A DNA stretch of 64,000 nt from Mytilus edulis (taxonomy: Eukaryota): the NCBI RefSeq assembly GCF_963676685.1, contig NC_092350.1, positions 73,780,001 through 73,844,000 of the forward strand, read 5' to 3'. The notes below the pieces were generated by a model. The model did no database searches. It was not told the origin of the DNA and worked only from the letters and a program-made list of their open reading frames with translations. Shown piece after piece: positions 19,476 to 30,265 of the stretch. A program made the position numbers and the translations under genes. Numbering within the stretch: the stretch's first letter is position 1; every line of letters begins with the position of its first letter.

Positions 19476-20199
19476 GTCTTTGACTAGCAATACTTTGAAC
19501 CACTGACAACGGTCTCTTTAACGATCCCATGCTCAAAAATGACAAAACTAAAGAACAAAGTATATTGTCCCTGCTAGCCTGAATAGTGTAGGTTTCAGCT
19601 CGAGAGTTCCCACTAAAGGCATTTGTTTTTTTAGATAAAAAGATTTGTGATACCCAGTCTACAAAATCAAACAAAAGTTCAAAATCTGACTCTCGTCTGT
19701 ACTAATTGTTTCATTGGCAATTATACTACATTTTCTCATTATTATGTTGCTGCATAAATGTCTTTAAGGATGAAACTTCTGTTGGTGGTTACGGTTCGGA
19801 GATGGGCTATTCTGCCCTTGTCAGATTTCTCATACAAGTGTTTATATATTAGTATTCTAGTTAGAAGAAAAGAGCTTGCAGTTATCCGCTATCTCAAGAA
19901 GTTACACATTTGCATTAAATAACATGCGATGAAATAAACACTTGAAATTAGTGAAATTCTAAAGATGTCGTAGACATGTTGATTTATTAATCAGTCTGGG
20001 AATTCATGGCAAGCCATAACTCTACAATGTTATGGTAACCCATAACCTTTCAATTTTTTGAGATACCTCTACATTATCCTCTTTCATTTTAGTATGGTTA
20101 CGTTCTCATTATCACTTTCGGTATATTCCGGATCGCTAATCGTTCCCTCACCGATGTCGGTATTTTGTTAACAATTCACATCCGGGTCACTGTGTAAAA

Positions 20200-22457
20200 A
20201 TGGACGAACAACAACCATCGACATCGCATTCAAGGGGTATGTAAATTAGCCGACTACGGCAATATTATATGTTACACCTGAATGAACCTGCATGTAGTGG
20301 TACCTAAATGATTAATTTACATTTTACAATACTCAAACACGCAATTACGCTTTTATTTAAACAAATTACGCTTTTCCAAACTCGTCCAAAACATGGAATA
20401 TACACGTACGTTATGGTTAACCCTAACTTTATTCACCTGAATGGTTACGGTTTACCATAACTAAAGAAAGGTTACGGATATCCGTAACTTAAATGGGGAG
20501 CAGTTGTTTATTTTATTAAACAAGCTGAACGGATAATTGATATCGAGGTAAAATGAAAAAAGGGGGGTTGTAAACATGTAAATATACACGAAATAAAGCG
20601 CATGTTAAATATGCATGGTATTTAGAAGAGTAAATTTTCAAAGAAATATTGGAGAGCAGTTTAAAAAATATTATATTTACACAAGGATTTTTATAGTTGG
20701 TTTACATCAACATGATCAACAATGTATAAGCAGCAGTATTTCTGGCCTGTTAAAGTTTTATACTATATTTGTGAAGTCATACATGTATCTTACATGTTTT
20801 GAAAAAAAAACATAAAATGTTGATCAACCTTACCAACATTCAGACACACAATTATAGCGCTTTTATTTAAAGAATTTACTCTTTTCCAAACTCACTCAAA
20901 AAATAAAATATTCATAAGAGTTGTGGTTAATGTAATAATTCAGAATATTCATTTGTTTAAAATTGTTCCACTTCCAATGCTTCGAAACAGAAACAGTATT
21001 ACAAGCTGTCAGTCTGTCTGTCCATCCTGTCTCGTTTGAACTTATATAAGGTGCACTCTATAATGTGTGAAGCATGCATATTACAAGTTAACCTTGTATG
21101 AAATATTATGCATCATGAGAAATACAATGCATGCATGTCAACTTCATGACATAGTTTGCCTATATGCTGCCTGTATACATAGCTATTCATGACAGTTGTC
21201 AATTACAGATCGTTGAATTTGCAAAATGTACATGTACGTAGTATTCATTTATCCATTAGCACTTAAATATTGATAAAAGGCCTAAATTAAAATATTGTTT
21301 GTTTCCCTAATCCAGACCGACCCTACACAAATGGTACTACTCATGAAATTTTATTGTCAAAACTAAGTCAAATATTATTTTATTCGTTTTGGATTTTAAG
21401 GCTTTCCAGATCGTCCGATTAAGTTCAAGCTTTTTGGAAAATAAAATTATTTACCTACCTACCTATCCACACCTGGCTTGGCAAGGTTGGGATTGGGGAA
21501 ACAAACAATCTATTAATTTAGGCCAAACCAAGTCAATTGAGCTTTGAGGAAATCTCACAATGGTAAAAAACAAAAGCACCAATTTCACAGCTGCATAATA
21601 TCTTTTTAATTATTCAGTTCATTTTTATTACATACTAGTTTATTGTACATGTTGTAGCTTTGAAACAAACATACATATGAAAATAAATAGATATAAAGTT
21701 ATTGTGCACGAGATAAAATCACATACAATACATAGAAAAATAAATACAAATTACAAATGAAAAGGGCTTTTTTACCTGTTCTTCATCTTGACAGTTTTCA
21801 GAAGGTCTTTTACAAAGAAAAATCATTCATATATGTAGCCTACAACACGACCAAGACAGCCCCTAGCATATGATTGTTTAATTTTAAGTTCACCATGCTT
21901 TAAAAGTTTTTCTTAATAACATAAAAAGAGTCACATTTCTCTGCATTATGCATATTTACAAGTTATTAGTACATGTACATGCATGAATTATGCACTCATA
22001 TAATTTGTCCCTACCTATGACCTATAACTTTATAGTCACATGTCTTAAATTTTCAGAAGACTTTCCAACAACTGATAAGCATCACATGGAAAAGTTAAAT
22101 GAAATTTGTCGAATATGTGGTAAAGTGATGAAAAAGCCAATTCAAAAGATAAAGTTTGCTGATGAGTTTAAAGGACTTTTTGAAATTGACGTGAAAAAAG
22201 AAGACCCACAAATTTTTCCAGCATATATGTGTGCTATGCATGGTGCTATGTTTTACCGTTTTAGGACTGCATTGCGAAACAATGCACCGTATTCTACTGA
22301 TTTTCTTCCTCCTACTTTTGAAATGCATTCAGACCATTGTCAAGTTTGCAAAAAAACAAGTGTCTTGGATAAAGATGTTACAGAAAGGTCGCGCTGGAAC
22401 CCTCCTGGAAGAGGAAAACGTTGTGCAACATATATACAACCAAACAATTTAGATACG
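20200..22457 (+). pseudogene. Spliced gene for a RAG1 N-terminal (CND/Chapa-like) Zn-binding domain, disrupted by a Penelope insertion; exons 20200-20236 and 22057-22457
   Basis: HMEKLNEICRICG..FEIDVKKEDPQIFPAYMC..FEMHSDHCQVC parallels vertebrate RAG1 H..L..LCRICG..FRIDVK.D...IHP..FC..W.PH...C..C. Phase-1 donor G|GTATGT and acceptor TTTCAG|AA join in frame. Confidence 0.8.
21279..21524. mobile_element. MITE with GGCC termini and 3 bp flanks (Zator/PIF-like)
   Basis: ggcctaaattaa..ttgtttgtttccc at the left and gggaaacaaacaa..ttaatttaggcc at the right; AAA on both sides. Confidence 0.75.
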
Positions 22458-22581
22458 AATGAGATATAACGAGTCCAGAACCAATCCTATATATACCAAT
22501 ACATATTCTTAGTATTTGACTTTATTTCATAATCTATTTTGTTCAATTCAATATTTTATCATAAATATTTGTTGTTTTTTA

Positions 22582-22729
22582 AGGTGTTTCGGTTAAGGTT
22601 TAACTACCAAGGCTTTTCCTCATCAGGTATCCCAAGCCTCTAACTAATAAAATAATCAGTTTCAAAGTAAAGTTCAAAGCATCCATACGCATAGAATTTA
22701 AAAATTCTGCATACCGGGATACGACACCT
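22582..22729 (-). ncRNA. Type III hammerhead ribozyme, copy 1
   Basis: AGGUGUC^GUAUCCC...GGGAUAC CUGAUGA G...C GAAACACCU: 7 bp stem I, 6 bp stem III, intact core and GUC triplet. Confidence 0.85.
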
Positions 22730-22831
22730 GGTAACTTTGTATTGATGTATTGTATTCTAAATTAAATCAGTTTATGATTTGATATAACTATTGTCTTTTA
22801 TGTTGTGATTTATCCTATAACTTGGTTTATC

Positions 22832-24139
22832 CTATAACTTGGAGGATGTAAGTAGATCCTTCAAGTTTTTGTTTCTTTTATATGCTATGATCGGAGGTTT
22901 TGGAAACATGGTTTTTGTGATATCATTTTGTTCAATTAGGTGCCAATGTTTTTTAATTGCTTTATTTAGTCCATTGAAGGAAGGATTAAATTTGGTGGCT
23001 AAAACTAATGGAGGCATTGCTCTTGTGTTTTTAAGCTTGTACCTTAGACAATCTTTTCTTTCCTTATGAAGTGCATTTGTTATAATGGGGTTGATATCTT
23101 TTTCCGAGTATCCCCTTTGGAGAAGTTTTGTTTTAAAAGTTTCAATTTCTTTTAGTGTATCTTTTTTGTTATTTGATGATCTCATAAAACGCAATATTTC
23201 CGCAGTAATAAATCCATTGAACACCGATGATGGGTGAGCTGACGTTCGTTCAAGATACTGAAAGTTATCAGTAGGTTTACGGTATAGTTTTACGTCTAAT
23301 ATATTATGATTAAGGAATCTGTTTCCTTTAAAAATTGTGACGTCAAGGAATTGAATGCTAGATTGTGATATTTCATGCGTAAATTTTATCAACGGGTGTA
23401 TATTATTAGCAATGTTAAATAATTCAGTAAGATTATCTTGACTAGAATTAAAAAGAATGAATCCATCATCTCTGTATATAGATAACAGTGCTAAGTTATC
23501 TTTAAAAGGAAATATATCAAGAATATTCGTTATAATCTCGAACATTCTTAAATCAGCCAGGGATGGGCTCATTGGGGCTCCCATTGGGATTCCACATGTC
23601 TGTCTGAATATCAAGTTATTAAATTCAAATTCATTATTGCATAGAATGAATTGAAGTATTCGTAAGAAGTCCTTTTTTGGTGGTAGAGGTATTTCATGTT
23701 TATTACGACATATTTTGTACCATGCTCTGTCAACTGCTTGCAGTATTTCATCGTGAGTTAAGGAATTGTACATACTAGTAATATCAAAAGTGCACATAAT
23801 TATGTCATCCGGTGCCCTTATTTGTTCTATTTTGTTGATAAATGAGGTCGTGTCTTGTGTATAAGTCCATAATTGGCTAACTACCGGTTTTAGGAAGTGG
23901 TCTATAAATTGACCAATTTTTTCAATTGGACTATTGCATAATGATACAATTGGTCTCCCAGGAATATCTATATTTTTAAGGAAATCTTTGTTAGTTTTGA
24001 TTTTTTCTCTATCTTCATGGTTAATTTTGTGAATTTTTGGCAACATATAGAGTCGTCCCACTCGTATATTGGCATTATTGGCTAGGTATTTATATGTTAT
24101 ATCGTCGATATATTCTTTCTTGTGTAGTTGTTTGATCAT
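22832..24139 (-). CDS. PLE reverse transcriptase (frame open back to ~24245); no C-terminal GIY-YIG
   Basis: LYMLPKIHK, GRPIVS, FDITSMY, Q..GIPMG, YRDDGF, FLDV, YRKPT..YL..S.HP, AYKRNKNLKDLL then stop. Confidence 0.9.
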   Translation of the reverse strand: MIKQLHKKEYIDDITYKYLANNANIRVGRLYMLPKIHKINHEDREKIKTNKDFLKNIDIPGRPIVSLCNSPIEKIGQFIDHFLKPVVSQLWTYTQDTTSFINKIEQIRAPDDIIMCTFDITSMYNSLTHDEILQAVDRAWYKICRNKHEIPLPPKKDFLRILQFILCNNEFEFNNLIFRQTCGIPMGAPMSPSLADLRMFEIITNILDIFPFKDNLALLSIYRDDGFILFNSSQDNLTELFNIANNIHPLIKFTHEISQSSIQFLDVTIFKGNRFLNHNILDVKLYRKPTDNFQYLERTSAHPSSVFNGFITAEILRFMRSSNNKKDTLKEIETFKTKLLQRGYSEKDINPIITNALHKERKDCLRYKLKNTRAMPPLVLATKFNPSFNGLNKAIKKHWHLIEQNDITKTMFPKPPIIAYKRNKNLKDLLTSSKL

Positions 24140-24369
24140 TTTTTGAATAGTTTCGGATATTTTGTTCGTATTAAATTCATGAATTTGCTCATAGCATATA
24201 CTGTTGTTCAGGAAATTCAGTGTTTGTTTAATATATAGATTTTTAAATGAGATATAACGAGTCCAGAACCAATCCTATATATACCAATACATATTCTTAG
24301 TATTTGACTTTATTTCATAATCTATTTTGTTCAATTCAATATTTTATCATAAATATTTGTTGTTTTTTA

Positions 24370-24517
24370 AGGTGTTTCGGTTAAGGTTTAACTACCAAGG
24401 CTTTTCCTCATCAGGTATCCCAAGCCTCTAACTAATAAAATAATCAGTTTCAAAGTAAAGTTCAAAGCATCCATACGCATAGAATTTAAAAATTCTGCAT
24501 ACCGGGATACGACACCT
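24370..24517 (-). ncRNA. Type III hammerhead ribozyme, copy 2
   Basis: Same motif in the second direct repeat. Confidence 0.85.
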
Positions 24518-24955
24518 GGTAACTTTGTATTGATGTATTGTATTCTAAATTAAATCAGTTTATGATTTGATATAACTATTGTCTTTTATGTTGTGATTTA
24601 TCCTATAACTTGGTTTATCCTATAACTTGGAGGATGTAAGTAGATCCTTCAAGTTTTTGTTTCTTTTATATGCTATGATCGGAGGTTTTGGAAACATGGT
24701 TTTTGTGATATCATTTTGTTCAATTAGGTGCCAATGTTTTTTAATTGCTTTATTTAGTCCATTGAAGGAAGGATTAAATTTGGTGGCTAAAACTAATGGA
24801 GGCATTGCTCTTGTGTTTTTAAGCTTGTACCTTAGACAATCTTTTCTTTCCTTATGAAGACATATTGTTTTACTGCCAAACACCTCTTATCATTAATATT
24901 ATTTAAATATCATGATAATTGTGTCCATAAAGTAATTATCAAATCAATTTAATTA

Positions 24956-25018
24956 AAACACATGTTTTGTGTGTCCAAGCTTTGTTTACAAGTATCTGAA
25001 ACCAATTACTGTCCGTTT
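24956..25018 (+). pseudogene. Possible decayed RING-finger remnant of the RAG1-N-like gene
   Basis: Translates KHMFCVSKLCLQVSETNYCPF, resembling RAG1 KHVFC..C...C......YCP.C; lies just beyond the PLE insertion; flanked by stops. Confidence 0.4.
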
Positions 25019-25240
25019 TCCTCGTGGTGTGTCTTATCAAAATGCAGCTTGAACAGTTTGTAAGCTCTGAAGTCTCAATGACTGATGTATTATAACCAGA
25101 ACAAAAAGTAAAACAAAGAGCTCTGAGTTTCTGTGTGATAGAATACATTATAATTTGAATTCAAAGTGGTTCATTTGCACTCATACCACGGATACATCTA
25201 CTTGTAAATATAAAAATGATCTGTATTTTAAAAATTGTAG

Positions 25241-26276
25241 GTGCAGATCTGTTTGACATGAGAGATATAGGAGAAGAGGAAAACGAGTTGGATTCTGACA
25301 GAGGTAGCTATTTCTTAAAGACATATTTTTAAAAATAGGGAAGATTACATTTCAAAATGATTGTTTACATTTTTTTTTCAAATAAATATATACATTTCGA
25401 TGAACATGATGAATGAAACAAACGATTTCTATTAATCCTCATCTTTATGATCATTAAATCTCTGATTATAAAACATTTGCACATGTTCAAGACTGTTCAT
25501 AGCTTTATAGGAAATAACATCAATTGACATGATTGATCGTTTTAACCTTATTTACATAATACATTTATTTATTTGTAGATTCAGAGGAGAGTATGGTTTA
25601 CATTGCTACTCCATGTACACCTCAATCCAGCAAAGCCCCATCACCCAGAAAAAGAAAGAGGGGACAGTATTTAAGAAAAGAAAGCGGGACAAGTTCACAG
25701 AAGGAAAAAAGGGAAGCCAACAGAATTAAAGGGATTCACCACAGGAGGAGGAATGCAATATATAAAGAATTGCTTCATTTAAAAATGGACACCCAGTGGG
25801 AGGGGATAGTAATTCTAAGGTCCAAAGATAAAACAAAAATAGTTTGTGGGGGAACAGATACAGAGCTCGAAGAACGGTTTTTCCAGCAGGAAGTTCTTGT
25901 TGACAATTTGGACAAAATCAAAAAAAAAGATATGCACAAAATTGACATGTCTAGTGTTATGCTCAAACTGTCTTCAGTTGGTAAAAGGATGGAATCAGTT
26001 CTTGAATCTCCTGATCCATCGCCATCAAAGGTTCCAGAGATTGCAAGGGATATGCTACCAGGGCCATCCCAAAAAAAAGATCTGGAATCCATTCCATTGA
26101 AAAAATCTGATGGTGTCAGTGATTACCAGTCGATTTTGACTGGTTTCACTAAGAAGAAGAGCAACATATGCCTCTTCAAATCTGATAAAGGAGGAGAAGC
26201 TTCCGAGGAACAGTCAGGAAAAGGAAAAGGCAAAGGAAAGGGAAAAGGAAAGGGCAAAAAATCAAAGAAGGACTAA
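25241..26276 (+). CDS. Transposon accessory gene of unknown function (acidic patch, basic region, (GK)n tail); exons 25241-25303 and 25579-26276, first exon probably 20200-20236
   Basis: 227 aa ORF preceded by TTGTAG acceptors at 25240 and 25578 and donor G|GTAGCT at 25303; all phase 1 and in frame (GADLFDM..DSDR-DSEESMVYI). Confidence 0.7.
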
Positions 26277-27643
26277 GTAACTTCTTTTAAATATCAATTG
26301 GTAACATCCGGTGCTAGTTCTTTGATTTAGGTTCCCTGGATTTCATTCACAAAAATGGGGGGATACTAAGTTTTTTAGACTTTACCTCAAAAATGTTTTA
26401 GGAATATTCATACAATCTCCTTTTTGATTTTAAATAAAAATCCATGTTGTTATTACAATTTAGAACTTTTAAGTGTTAACCAAAATATTCACATAGTGTT
26501 ATTCACTTTAGAATGCCTAAAATTATTTCCATTTAAACTTAAAAAATGTAAAATCATGTTTATATTCCGATTTTGTCGTTGTTGTTTTTTTCTCATATGT
26601 TGTTTCAGAGTACAGGTTATACCATTCTGAAATAAGACAATTTTGTTAATACTTGTTTTGGGCAATAACTCTAGTATGTCTTTACTTTTCAGTTCTTTTG
26701 CCAGCTTCATTCTGTTGAGCATTTTATTATATTTTGACTCTAGATTCATTTCTCAGGAGCCACTTTTGATTCATATACTACCTTCATTTAAACAGTCTTA
26801 TTGCTGTAGTAAATAAGCAGTTTGAATAAAATTGCAGGCGTATTGTGTCTATAGTAAGTCTTTTAAACATTGTAAATATGAAATATGCAGCATGTCTTTG
26901 TTTTTGTATTTTTGTTATGATCAGATATGTTTCATGGTTTAAAATATAGACAGAATAATTCCAAGACTTGGTTTCAAGGCAATATTGATTAATCTCTGTA
27001 ATTTTGTATTGAACAATGTTGAATACTGTCAGTATAATATAAGGTTGTGTTGAATATGCTAGTCATTTTTTTAGTATTTACAAAGTCATGTTTTATCACG
27101 TCATTATACTTCAAAAAGTAAGACCATTTGTAAAAGGTTTTTTTTTTTATTTTTGTTATGATTATATAGGTTTTTTAGGTGAAACTATATGTAAAGTACA
27201 TGTAAAATACAAATACATTAATACATGTATTTGCAGAATGTTATAGGCAATGATAGTAACAGTCTGACACTCTATTCCAAGGCAATATTGAATTTTTTAT
27301 TTTATTTTTTATGAATATACAATATTTTTGTTATGAAATTTCAATTTTCTCAAACATTTACAAAGTTTTGTTTAAATGTGTCATCATGATTCACCCAATA
27401 ATGCTCTTTGTAACCACATACATGTTTTTGCCAAATTTAAAAGGCAGTTTTGATATTATGTTCATCTTTTTCAATTTGTTATAAATATACCTCATTGTCT
27501 ATATTTTTTATAAACATTTACAAAGTTATGTTTTTTAACTTGTTATTTTTATGTACGGGTATATCAATCATTGTTAATTACCATAATTATTGTTAAAACT
27601 TTTGAATACATGATATTTTTAATAAATTCATACTGATCAACAT

Positions 27644-29019
27644 TTATGCATATAGTCTTTGTTGTAAGTCTTCATGAGTCACACATTCTTCAATAATGTG
27701 CATGGCATGTTCAAAATATTCCTTCTTTATCTGAATAACATAGTGGCATTTTAAATCTGCTCCCCCTCCTGGTTGGTCATGTCTTTCGTTGCCTCTTCTG
27801 CGTCTAAATTGCTGGTGAGAGAGTGGTCTTGTTGACACAGTTGCTTCCCCAGTGTATCTACATGTTATATTTTCAACATAACCCCTTGTTGTCAACAGAT
27901 GGAAGGCCTTACACAGATTTGCTGGTACTCTCCCTACTTGTTTACCTGAATAATAATATAAATCAGATATAAATAATATGAATATTTGTTTTACATGAAA
28001 TTAGAATCATGAATTGTCTATATTCAATTTTCACAAAAGTGATGTTAGTACAATAGCTATTCAAATATGTTAGGAAGCATTAAGTTTAAGAGCTACGTGT
28101 CGAAATCATTGTTATGATCATTAGGCATCTATACTGGTCTTTTTAAAACGTTGCACTTCTATGGAAATAAAGATAATGACGAATAATTGTTTAACAACCA
28201 GTAGCAGGTCAGGTGCTTATTAAGGATTAGAACATGATAATGAGAAATAAGAAACCCTACTTTTGTACTAGCACTTGGACAGATTTTTAACAGTTTGCAG
28301 GAACAAATTATTTTGGATCCAGGCCAACTAGTCTTTGCTTTTACTCATTAAAGCTCAATGTCATGTGCTTGGCCATGTTGGCAGAGAAGCAGCAAATAAT
28401 TTTCAAGTCTGTGGTTGGTACCTTTGTCTTATGCCACTTGATATTTGATAACATAGATATAGGAAGATGTGGTGTGAGTGCCAATGAGACAACTCTCCAT
28501 CCAAATAACAATTTAAAAAGTACACCATTATAGGTTAAAGTACGGCCTTCAACACAGAGCCTTGGCTCACACCGAACAACAAGCTATAAAGGGCCCCAAT
28601 ATTACTAGTGTAAAACCATTCAAACGGGAAAACCAACGGTCTAATGCACCCTAACAATTTCACCACAGAGGGTTTTGGCAGTCTTTTGTTGTGTCAAGTC
28701 GTTCAAACAAAATAAAATTTTAACCTCACTAAGCAGGAAAACTTTACTCACCTGCTATGTGTCGCACTCTTTGTGGTGGATTACCATCTTTTGTTACAGT
28801 ATCATGAAGATGCTGAGGGATGTGCTGCAGTGCTGGAACTGACACCTTCATTGCATGAGGATCATATGGATTGTTAACCTCCAATTCAACATTCAATGGA
28901 ATCTCAACATGTGGCCGCAAACGAAAAACATGATAGCCTTTTATACTCCAATCAAATTTTATAGGTCTAACATTCATATTTTGTCTAACGATTGTGTTGT
29001 ATTCTGAACTGGATGCCAT
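27644..29019 (-). CDS. Intact two-exon HIRAN-like domain protein, 189 aa (exons 29019-28752 and 27945-27644)
   Basis: G|GTGAGT donor and TTCAG|G acceptor join IKGYHVF..LEVNNPYDPHAMKV to KQVGRVP..GGGADLKCHY, the E..N.YD..A..V / VG.VP HIRAN signature. Confidence 0.8.
28460..28645 (-). mobile_element. SINE-like 3' fragment (family B) in the HIRAN gene intron
   Basis: aagatgtggt..gccaatgagacaactctcca is the reverse complement of copies at 29870-29915 and 30225-30260. Confidence 0.6.
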
Positions 29020-29327
29020 GATCAAGAAGATACAAAATATAGCATTTTGCTTATGGTATGGACTACCAAAACCTTTTGATGACTTGAGGTTATGGTAAAC
29101 CCTAACTAGAAAGGTAATGGATGCCCATAACCTTATCAAGAGAAATGAAAAATAATTTCTCCCTCCCTCAAAATGCACAGTTATGGATATCCATAACTAT
29201 GAAGGTTATGGGTTACCATAACATTGTAGAGTTATGGCTTGCCATGAATTCCCAGACTGTTAATTGATTAGGATAAGATATCTTGGTTTTCAGTTGATTG
29301 CATCCGTGTCGTTCTCTCACAAGTACA

Positions 29328-29495
29328 AATGAAGATCTCGATCATTGTTCTGTTTATTTCTGTGTCATTTTGTCTCTTGTGCATGGAGGGTAATCACACC
29401 ACCTCGTCGTTTTATGAAGATCTCGATCATTGTTCTGTTTATTTCTGTGTCATTTTGTCTCTTGTGGAGGGTAATCACACCACCTCGTCGTTTTA
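29328..29495. repeat. ~86 bp tandem duplication of a SINE-derived 3' end
   Basis: atgaagatctcgatcattg...cacctcgtcgttttat occurs twice. Confidence 0.8.
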
Positions 29496-29649
29496 TAAGT
29501 ACAGAAAATCTTGGAAAGCTCATTTTTAATTGTTTTATTTTTTCTTTAATCGAATATTACAATCGTTACACCATTTTCCAAAGTCATGAATGCTTGGCGC
29601 CTTAAACATGATTTTACCCTGTCACATTATGTATATATATCTATATATA

Positions 29650-30265
29650 TATGTGTCTGTTCTTATTTAGGAGCCTGTAAACCAGTGGTTGTCATTTATT
29701 GCTGTATATCATATTTGTTTTCCGTTCATTGTTTTAGTACATATGTCATTTTTTTTATTTGTCATTTTGGAGCCTTTTATAGTTGACTGTACGGCATGGG
29801 TTTTACTCATTGTTGAAGCCCGTGCGCACGTGGCGACCTAATGTAAATCGGTAAATTTCAGCGTCATTTGGTCTCTTGTAGAGTGTTGTCTCATTGGCAA
29901 CCATACCATGTATTCATTTTTTTTAAATACCAGTTTATAGGTAGTCAATTGCACCACAATTGCACCAGAAAAAAACTTAATATGGGGAATTCTATATGTG
30001 CATGTACCAAGTTAGTAGCCTGTAAAAATCTGTATTCTTGCATTTATTGCTATGTATCATAATATTTTTCCGCTGTTGTTGTACATAAGTTGTTTTATAT
30101 TTGTCATTTTGCCATTTTGAGGCCTTTCATAGCTTACTATATGTGGTGTGGGTTTTGTTCATTTTTGAAGACCGTACGTTAACTAATAGTTGTATAATTT
30201 TTGTGCATTTGTTCTCTGACCATGTGGAGATTTGTCTCATTGGCAATCATACCAAATCTTCCTAT
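29650..30265 (+). mobile_element. Two decayed tandem SINE-like family B copies
   Basis: agcctgtaa..gtcatttt..gcct..atag..gaag.ccgt..ttgtctcattggcaa.catacca occurs twice. Confidence 0.6.

Follow-up and report, generated by a model that had tools for sequence, protein, structure and literature searches.

Within a window of 64,000 nucleotides of the Mytilus edulis genome, positions 19992–29259 are occupied by a DNA transposon that carries a truncated transposase gene with a RAG1-type N-terminal zinc finger, a nested retroelement, an open reading frame (ORF) that we call ORF2, and a convergent gene for a HIRAN-like protein. The element starts with CAGTCTGGG and ends with CCCAGACTG, and its termini thus read CAGTC...GACTG. 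An inverted-repeat comparison of the window defined two arms of 73 nt each (19992–20064 in plus and 29187–29259 in minus orientation) that show 90% complementarity and are 100% identical over their outer 58 nt. TTAAT lies directly outside each end, at 19987–19991 on the left and, matching it, at 29260–29264 on the right.

The transposon inserted into another repeat. This host repeat measures at least 1 kb (window 19492–19991 plus 29260–29760) and has at least 13 further copies in the genome, 87–99% identical, several of which are empty sites. In six other copies of the host repeat, the match to the left flank runs directly into the match to the right flank, with an overlap of exactly 5 bp, for example C9:58449610–58450109 with C9:58449117–58449614. 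These six paralogous empty sites fix both the boundaries of the element and the 5-bp target-site duplication. Besides several solitary ends, the genome contains six complete copies of the element, and the 5-bp duplication differs from copy to copy (TTAAT, CTAGA, CTGAT, TCTAG, TTATG and AGTAA). The perfect 58-bp inverted ends, the CAGTC termini and the TTAAT duplication described in a first-pass annotation of this DNA are thereby confirmed. The stretch is a genuine DNA transposon that arrived in one insertion and was recently mobile, and it belongs to an apparently young cut-and-paste family of M. edulis.

All six complete copies and most of the listed end matches show 100% conservation of the 58-nt ends, with a few ends at 93–98%. 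In short copies of 2.6–3.5 kb, the DNA adjoining these ends is only 84–90% identical, and this difference points to selection on the ends. Four such short copies (L022–L025; G000 C4, C12, C3 and C9) keep the 58-nt termini perfectly. What they have in common with the long copies, at 84–94% identity, is limited to about 670 bp at the left end and about 320 bp at the right end, and one of the four keeps a remnant of exon 1 of the HIRAN-like gene. A motif search for the palindromic 18-mer GTTAYGG-N4-CCRTAAC produced eight matches in the 64-kb window, all of them in the element ends, where 0.03 were expected. A left subterminal array of four matches lies at 20029–20488, no more than about 500 bp from the left end; the right array, also of four, lies at 29089–29222, no more than about 170 bp from the right end. 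These palindromes are candidate transposase-binding sites.

The plus-strand ORF at 21990–22469 (159 amino acids) matches the Pfam family PF12560 (RAG1_imp_bd), the model of which covers the RAG1 N-terminal region, with E = 1.2e-7 and 32 bits against a cut-off of 23.3 bits, in agreement with the initial view of this gene as RAG1 N-terminal-like. The region corresponds to the Chapa domain, a zinc finger homologous to the RAG1 N-terminal domain that defines Chapaev elements (PMC4411706; bioRxiv 10.64898/2026.01.24.700457). Spliced products were analysed either as separate exons or as the annotated proteins P0001 and P0042. P0001, an M. edulis protein of 1030 amino acids annotated by NCBI, has a first exon of 12 codons; its first 12 residues map, in a sister copy of the transposon, to the equivalent of window 20200–20236, where the plus strand reads MDEQQPSTSHSR plus one base, followed by a GT donor, and this exon splices to 22056. 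The ORF, the Pfam match and the alignment with the sister copy place the Chapa-encoding remainder of exon 2 at 22056–22459 in the window. Beyond this point the frame enters the retroelement and stops at 22467–22469. A decayed RING domain had been suspected behind the finger, and this suspicion did not hold up: Pfam gave no RING match in ORF 21990–22469 or in the full-length protein of 1040 amino acids.

The retroelement, which is Penelope-like and 2392 bp long, occupies 22460–24851 on the minus strand, as judged from its RVT_1 match and from comparison with the sister copy. Its minus-strand ORF at 22832–24139 (435 amino acids) encodes a reverse transcriptase (RVT_1, E = 8.5e-9), and its 3′ part contains a partial tandem repeat in which 24620–24883 repeats the end of this ORF. 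Window and sister copies are collinear except between window positions 22459 and 24852, where the retroelement replaces 4031 bp of the transposon rather than simply interrupting it. The replaced sequence comprises transposase codons ~157 to 1040 and 1378 bp downstream. With a retroelement in place of these 4031 bp, the window copy is a gutted derivative. It contains no catalytic core but retains a Chapa-only stub and an intact, spliced HIRAN-like gene, and it is non-autonomous and internally deleted, as the first-pass annotation had concluded from the missing core. Because everything after the Chapa domain has been replaced, this copy could be moved only by transposase supplied in trans; the sister copy has identical ends.

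A genome search with the 159-amino-acid ORF recovered the same ORF, 97% identical, within an open frame of 1040 amino acids on contig C3. The copy that contains it, G000:C3:60018682–60029587, measures 10.9 kb, is 98.8–99.5% identical to the window copy and is flanked by the duplication CTAGA. It supplies the kind of autonomous relative that had been recommended as a search target. This sister copy appears to be the autonomous form of the family, with transposase, ORF2 and convergent HIRAN-like gene between perfect 58-nt ends. Its transposase has relatives of 26–70% identity in molluscs, in the annelid Owenia and in the fungus Gigaspora, and we counted domains and residues over 28 of them. RAG1_imp_bd is matched by 17 of these 28 and DUF6589 by 14 (best E = 2.2e-9); no other Pfam transposase family is matched by any of the 28. 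When compared with the PDB, the family profile matches RAG1 chains only at residues 102–272, including the nuclear magnetic resonance structure of the N-terminal zinc-finger domain, 21WB (E = 7.5e-9).

For the remainder of the protein we turned to a structure model of residues 255–965, which has a mean predicted local distance difference test score (pLDDT) of 86 and a predicted template modelling score of 0.86. A Foldseek search of the PDB with this core model found nothing at E ≤ 0.001, the best match being Hermes at 0.096. Exhaustive structural alignment of the core model gave Z scores of 10.2–10.3 for the P element transposase (339–349 aligned residues), about 9 for retroviral integrase cores (spanning model positions 74–614), 8.7–9.3 for Hermes and 8.5 for Tn5, followed by RAG1 with 5.6–6.2 (about 350 aligned residues) and HzTransib with 4.8. 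These matches argue for an RNase H-fold DDE transposase core, at about residues 328–868, with a helical insertion domain. All 28 relatives share residues D337, D578 and E830 and the four cysteines of a zinc ribbon (C456, C459, C470 and C473). A C2H2 finger of the form C-x2-C-x12-H-x3-H (C595, C598, H611 and H615) is nearly invariant, and H782, invariant in 28 of 28, pairs as H-x3-H with the nearly invariant H778. The core is thus modelled as holding both the zinc ribbon and the C2H2 finger along with the helical insertion domain. The predicted transposase of about 1030–1040 amino acids is composed of an N-terminal Chapa domain and a DDE/RNase H core.

The first-pass annotation had raised the possibility of an undescribed RAG-related lineage. 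Such a lineage, RAG-like or Transib-like, would have a very diverged RAG1/Transib core and a HIRAN-like gene in the place of RAG2. The family does share its 5-bp duplication with Transib and RAG-like elements and its RAG1-type N-terminal finger with RAG1L (Transib is without the finger), and RAG1 can be aligned over about 350 residues of the core model. The accessory gene is convergent, and in ProtoRAG and RAG-like elements, too, the transposase gene stands tail to tail with an accessory gene. However, the core has no detectable similarity to those of Transib and RAG-like elements. The Pfam RAG1 core, PF12940, matches none of the 28 relatives at E ≤ 1 and gave nothing in the genome search (a weak negative), the family profile meets RAG1 only in the N-terminal finger, and RAG1 and HzTransib score below the P element, Hermes, Tn5 and the integrases. 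The C-x2-C motif sits in a self-contained C2H2 finger. The ends begin with CAG rather than with the heptamer-like CAC, there is no RING, and the partner is HIRAN-like rather than a kelch RAG2-like protein; no kelch gene is present in the long copies, whose only other transposon ORFs are ORF2 and the HIRAN-like gene. We regard a new RAG-like lineage as very improbable. What stands of the proposed RAG relationship is the N-terminal finger, and kinship of the core with RAG1 or Transib does not. Because a RAG1-type finger is already known on Chapaev, the link to RAG is the known one and does not signal a new RAG lineage.

The N-terminal domain places the family nearest to Chapaev, and the core is most plausibly a distant relative of Pfam DUF6589. 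Chapaev transposases carry a RAG1-type Chapa domain at their N terminus, as the mussel protein does, and Chapaev and N-RAG-TP elements, the latter from Aplysia, are known in molluscs. With only the N-terminal finger left, the window copy is similar to the published description of N-RAG-TP (PMC8355894). The ends of the family follow only the looser CA..TG rule of the wider CMCT clade (PMC12730594). The family also differs from Chapaev in that it has a conserved HIRAN-like gene and ORF2, and its transposase is about twice as long as the Chapaev3 transposases of lizards (485–561 amino acids; PMC3014272). We note that D578, C595xxC598, H778xxxH782 and E830 are present and conserved, a pattern that recalls a feature of Chapaev (CMC) transposases. 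The C-x2-C lies within a complete C2H2 finger, and the likeness may be coincidental.

Two other superfamilies come into question on the basis of the duplication and the core. Elements of the hAT5 subgroup of hAT make 5-bp duplications and have CAG-type ends, both of which are seen here, and Hermes, with its Z score of 8.7–9.3, is among the best structural matches. However, none of the 28 relatives matches the Pfam families for hAT dimerisation, BED or hAT RNase H, and Chapaev and RAG-like elements are the only transposons from which a Chapa domain has been reported (PMC4411706; bioRxiv 10.64898/2026.01.24.700457), so that we give a hAT5-type element next to no credence.

The core could alternatively be Academ-like through DUF6589, with the Chapa domain as an N-terminal addition and the HIRAN-like protein as the counterpart of the Academ helicase or XPG nuclease. 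Academ elements (AcademH and AcademX) resemble the mussel family in being large DDE transposons with a DNA-repair-type accessory protein in animals and fungi; the DUF6589 matches in half of the 28 relatives make a link possible, and relatives are known from molluscs, an annelid and the fungus Gigaspora. The 5-bp duplication, on the other hand, fits neither the 3–4 bp nor the 9–10 bp of Academ, in which the accessory enzyme is an XPG nuclease or a helicase and the duplication length varies with it, AcademH being known by a helicase and a 9-bp duplication (PMC10045372), and neither long copy of the mussel family contains a nuclease or helicase ORF. In the genome, DUF6589 has at least 104 six-frame matches, some within open frames of 1200–1800 amino acids, and none of the 104 listed matches falls on copies of the mussel family. 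We consider an Academ-like origin unlikely, while keeping it among the serious candidates. The abundance of DUF6589 matches, together with the DDE fold of a distant relative, suggests that DUF6589 is a large transposase family, and the structure model indicates that DUF6589-related proteins are DDE transposases.

The gene convergent with the transposase lies on the minus strand and has two exons, which correspond to the annotated protein P0042 of 189 amino acids. Exon 1 (28750–29019, with the ATG at 29019), which is also supported by relatives, is followed by a GT..AG intron (27944–28749) and by exon 2 (27644–27943, stop codon at 27644–27646). The joint 27943/28750 is present in contigs of three runs from three studies, and one contig extends from 29166 to beyond 27400 across the gene; contigs that join 27943 to 28750 indicate that the gene is spliced as annotated. 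Pfam found no match in the two exons taken separately. HIRAN (PF08797) is the only family matched by the complete P0042, weakly (E = 0.0086, 16.3 bits), and likewise the only one matched by an oyster relative (E = 0.0044, under the cut-off). An exhaustive search with the HIRAN-like protein returned 317 related clusters at E ≤ 0.001, and 23 of 40 full-length relatives match Pfam HIRAN, the best of them with E = 1.1e-8. A profile of six sequences found nothing in the PDB. The family profile found only HLTF HIRAN domains, weakly (E ~ 0.4), and this alignment falls at the motifs NxYDxNA-KV and GxQVG. HIRAN clusters also emerged with 0.88 from a protein-language-model feature search of the ESM Atlas, which is only a lead. 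The HIRAN domain of HLTF/Rad5 is fused to an SNF2 ATPase, whereas the mussel protein is transposon-encoded and stands alone, with an extra loop of about 25 amino acids and a C-terminal extension. Judged by its homologues, the minus-strand gene probably codes for a divergent HIRAN-domain protein, and the first-pass annotation, which had named it HIRAN-like, is upheld by the relatives more than by the protein's own weak match.

The genome also contains a different multi-copy family, made up of single-exon ORFs of about 126 amino acids, that encodes a clear HIRAN domain (Pfam E = 6.7e-9 to 6.7e-7). Copies at L044:1471–1848, L045:1372–1749 and L046:1471–1848 (G000 C12, C9 and C2) lie on different chromosomes and are 89–90% identical; these ORFs may be cargo of another mobile element.

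The HIRAN-like gene recurs with the transposase in diverged paralogues of the transposon. When read directly, the loci on C6 (~81.09 Mb) and C3 (~12.70–12.71 Mb) both show a transposase gene followed by a convergent HIRAN-like gene, and ORF2 lies between the two at the C6 locus. At ~26.16 Mb and ~27.85 Mb on C11, match coordinates alone suggest the same gene order, with the genes 6–16 kb apart. The transposases of the paralogues are 46–52% identical to that of the sister copy and the HIRAN-like proteins 43–54%, and this similar divergence argues that both genes were inherited together rather than captured repeatedly. Because of this recurrence, we regard the HIRAN-like gene as conserved cargo. 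The C3 paralogue, 16.9 kb long and with a transposase at the lower bound of identity (46%), has CAGTC ends, a 5-bp duplication, ATTAC, and AYGG-N4/5-CCRT palindromes in its ends that are similar to the 18-mer of the window. Inverted ends were looked for in the C6 paralogue and not found, and comparison of short loci did not reveal the ends of more distant intact paralogues, where other repeats blur the boundaries. The other intact paralogues have ORFs of 934–1159 amino acids; the ORF of 1159 amino acids on C11 (~6.70 Mb), like others of them, may be without the HIRAN-like gene. Contig C11 holds a strikingly large share of the matches to paralogous transposases and HIRAN-like genes, at about 6–68 Mb, and these elements may accumulate in this region or on this chromosome.

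ORF2 (25593–26276, plus strand) encodes a lysine/arginine-rich protein of 227 amino acids with no known domain. It is conserved in the C6 paralogue with 31% identity (E = 2.6e-15), and its other homologues are uncharacterised. Captured host genes occur in large DNA transposons, and the HIRAN-like gene and ORF2 could be such passengers, with no part in transposition. This is improbable for the HIRAN-like gene in view of its position and convergent orientation, which are kept across paralogues that have diverged to about half identity in both proteins, of its intact, spliced frame and of the size of its family, with 317 clusters.

Taken together, the window element is best explained, with a probability of roughly 80%, as a gutted copy of a young family of Chapa-domain DDE transposons with a HIRAN-like partner. 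Several points weigh against this explanation. The superfamily name is unsettled, and Chapaev and Academ were compared by published description. Chapaev hallmarks are 3–4-bp duplications (TWA in Chapaev3) and invariant CAC...GTG ends (PMC4079192, PMC3014272), whereas the mussel family has 5-bp duplications (in six copies, one paralogous family and six empty sites) and CAGTC...GACTG ends (in two diverged families). For the partner, the 16.3 bits of the window protein are under the Pfam HIRAN cut-off of 24.7, a structure model from a six-sequence alignment reached a pLDDT of 45 and was too poor for a fold search, and a shallow profile–profile comparison with the clear HIRAN ORFs of the genome gave only a meaningless match of 30 columns. 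It is only a guess that the runs with spliced contigs are RNA, and one true RNA sequencing run, sampled at 6%, yielded no exon reads. Finally, the roles of the 18-mers, of the HIRAN-like protein and of ORF2 are inferred.

The HIRAN domain of HLTF binds 3′-OH DNA ends, and HIRAN binds 3′ DNA ends at stalled forks. We envisage that the transposase would bind the palindromic 18-mers in both ends and cut at the CAG termini, and that the element would be inserted across a 5-bp staggered cut. By analogy with HLTF and its 3′-OH ends, the HIRAN-like protein may act on the ends of transposon or donor DNA or on the 5-nt gaps. The window copy would be mobilised solely in trans, and its Chapa-only stub could compete for ends.

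Whether the family amounts to an undescribed lineage of Chapa-domain DDE transposons, defined by CAGTC ends, 5-bp duplications and an obligatory HIRAN partner that binds 3′ ends, is a more tentative matter; we hold it to be possible and would not yet bet on it. Three aspects of this proposal seem to be new when judged against published descriptions: the occurrence of 5-bp duplications and CAGTC ends with a transposase that has a Chapa domain, the HIRAN-like partner as a conserved component, and the interpretation of a protein related to DUF6589 as a DDE transposase. The HIRAN-like partner is the more original point, and full-text searches found no literature linking HIRAN to a eukaryotic DNA transposon. 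If the proposal is true, a DNA-end binder would be a further kind of accessory protein for eukaryotic cut-and-paste transposons, and a relative of Chapaev would share the duplication length of RAG and Transib, which bears on how the RAG1 N-terminal finger joined a transposase that makes 5-bp duplications. Known partner proteins include RAG2 for RAG1 and the Myb-like protein of Harbinger; a HIRAN-like partner that acts on transposition intermediates would parallel these and the helicase or nuclease of Academ. The window copy also shows how elements that carry only the RAG1 N terminus can originate, with the core lost by deletion or by retroelement replacement. The mussel family is intact and apparently young, and its 99%-identical pair of autonomous and non-autonomous copies with perfect ends makes function directly testable.

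The intron of the HIRAN-like gene contains a very abundant repeat at about 28453–28645. In three runs its summed contig depth exceeds 25,000, and it is matched by hundreds of raw RNA reads, with many variants and loose ends. This repeat is probably an abundant transcribed element that resembles a short interspersed nuclear element or a miniature inverted-repeat transposable element, and part of it resembles the left flank of the transposon at 19706–19748.

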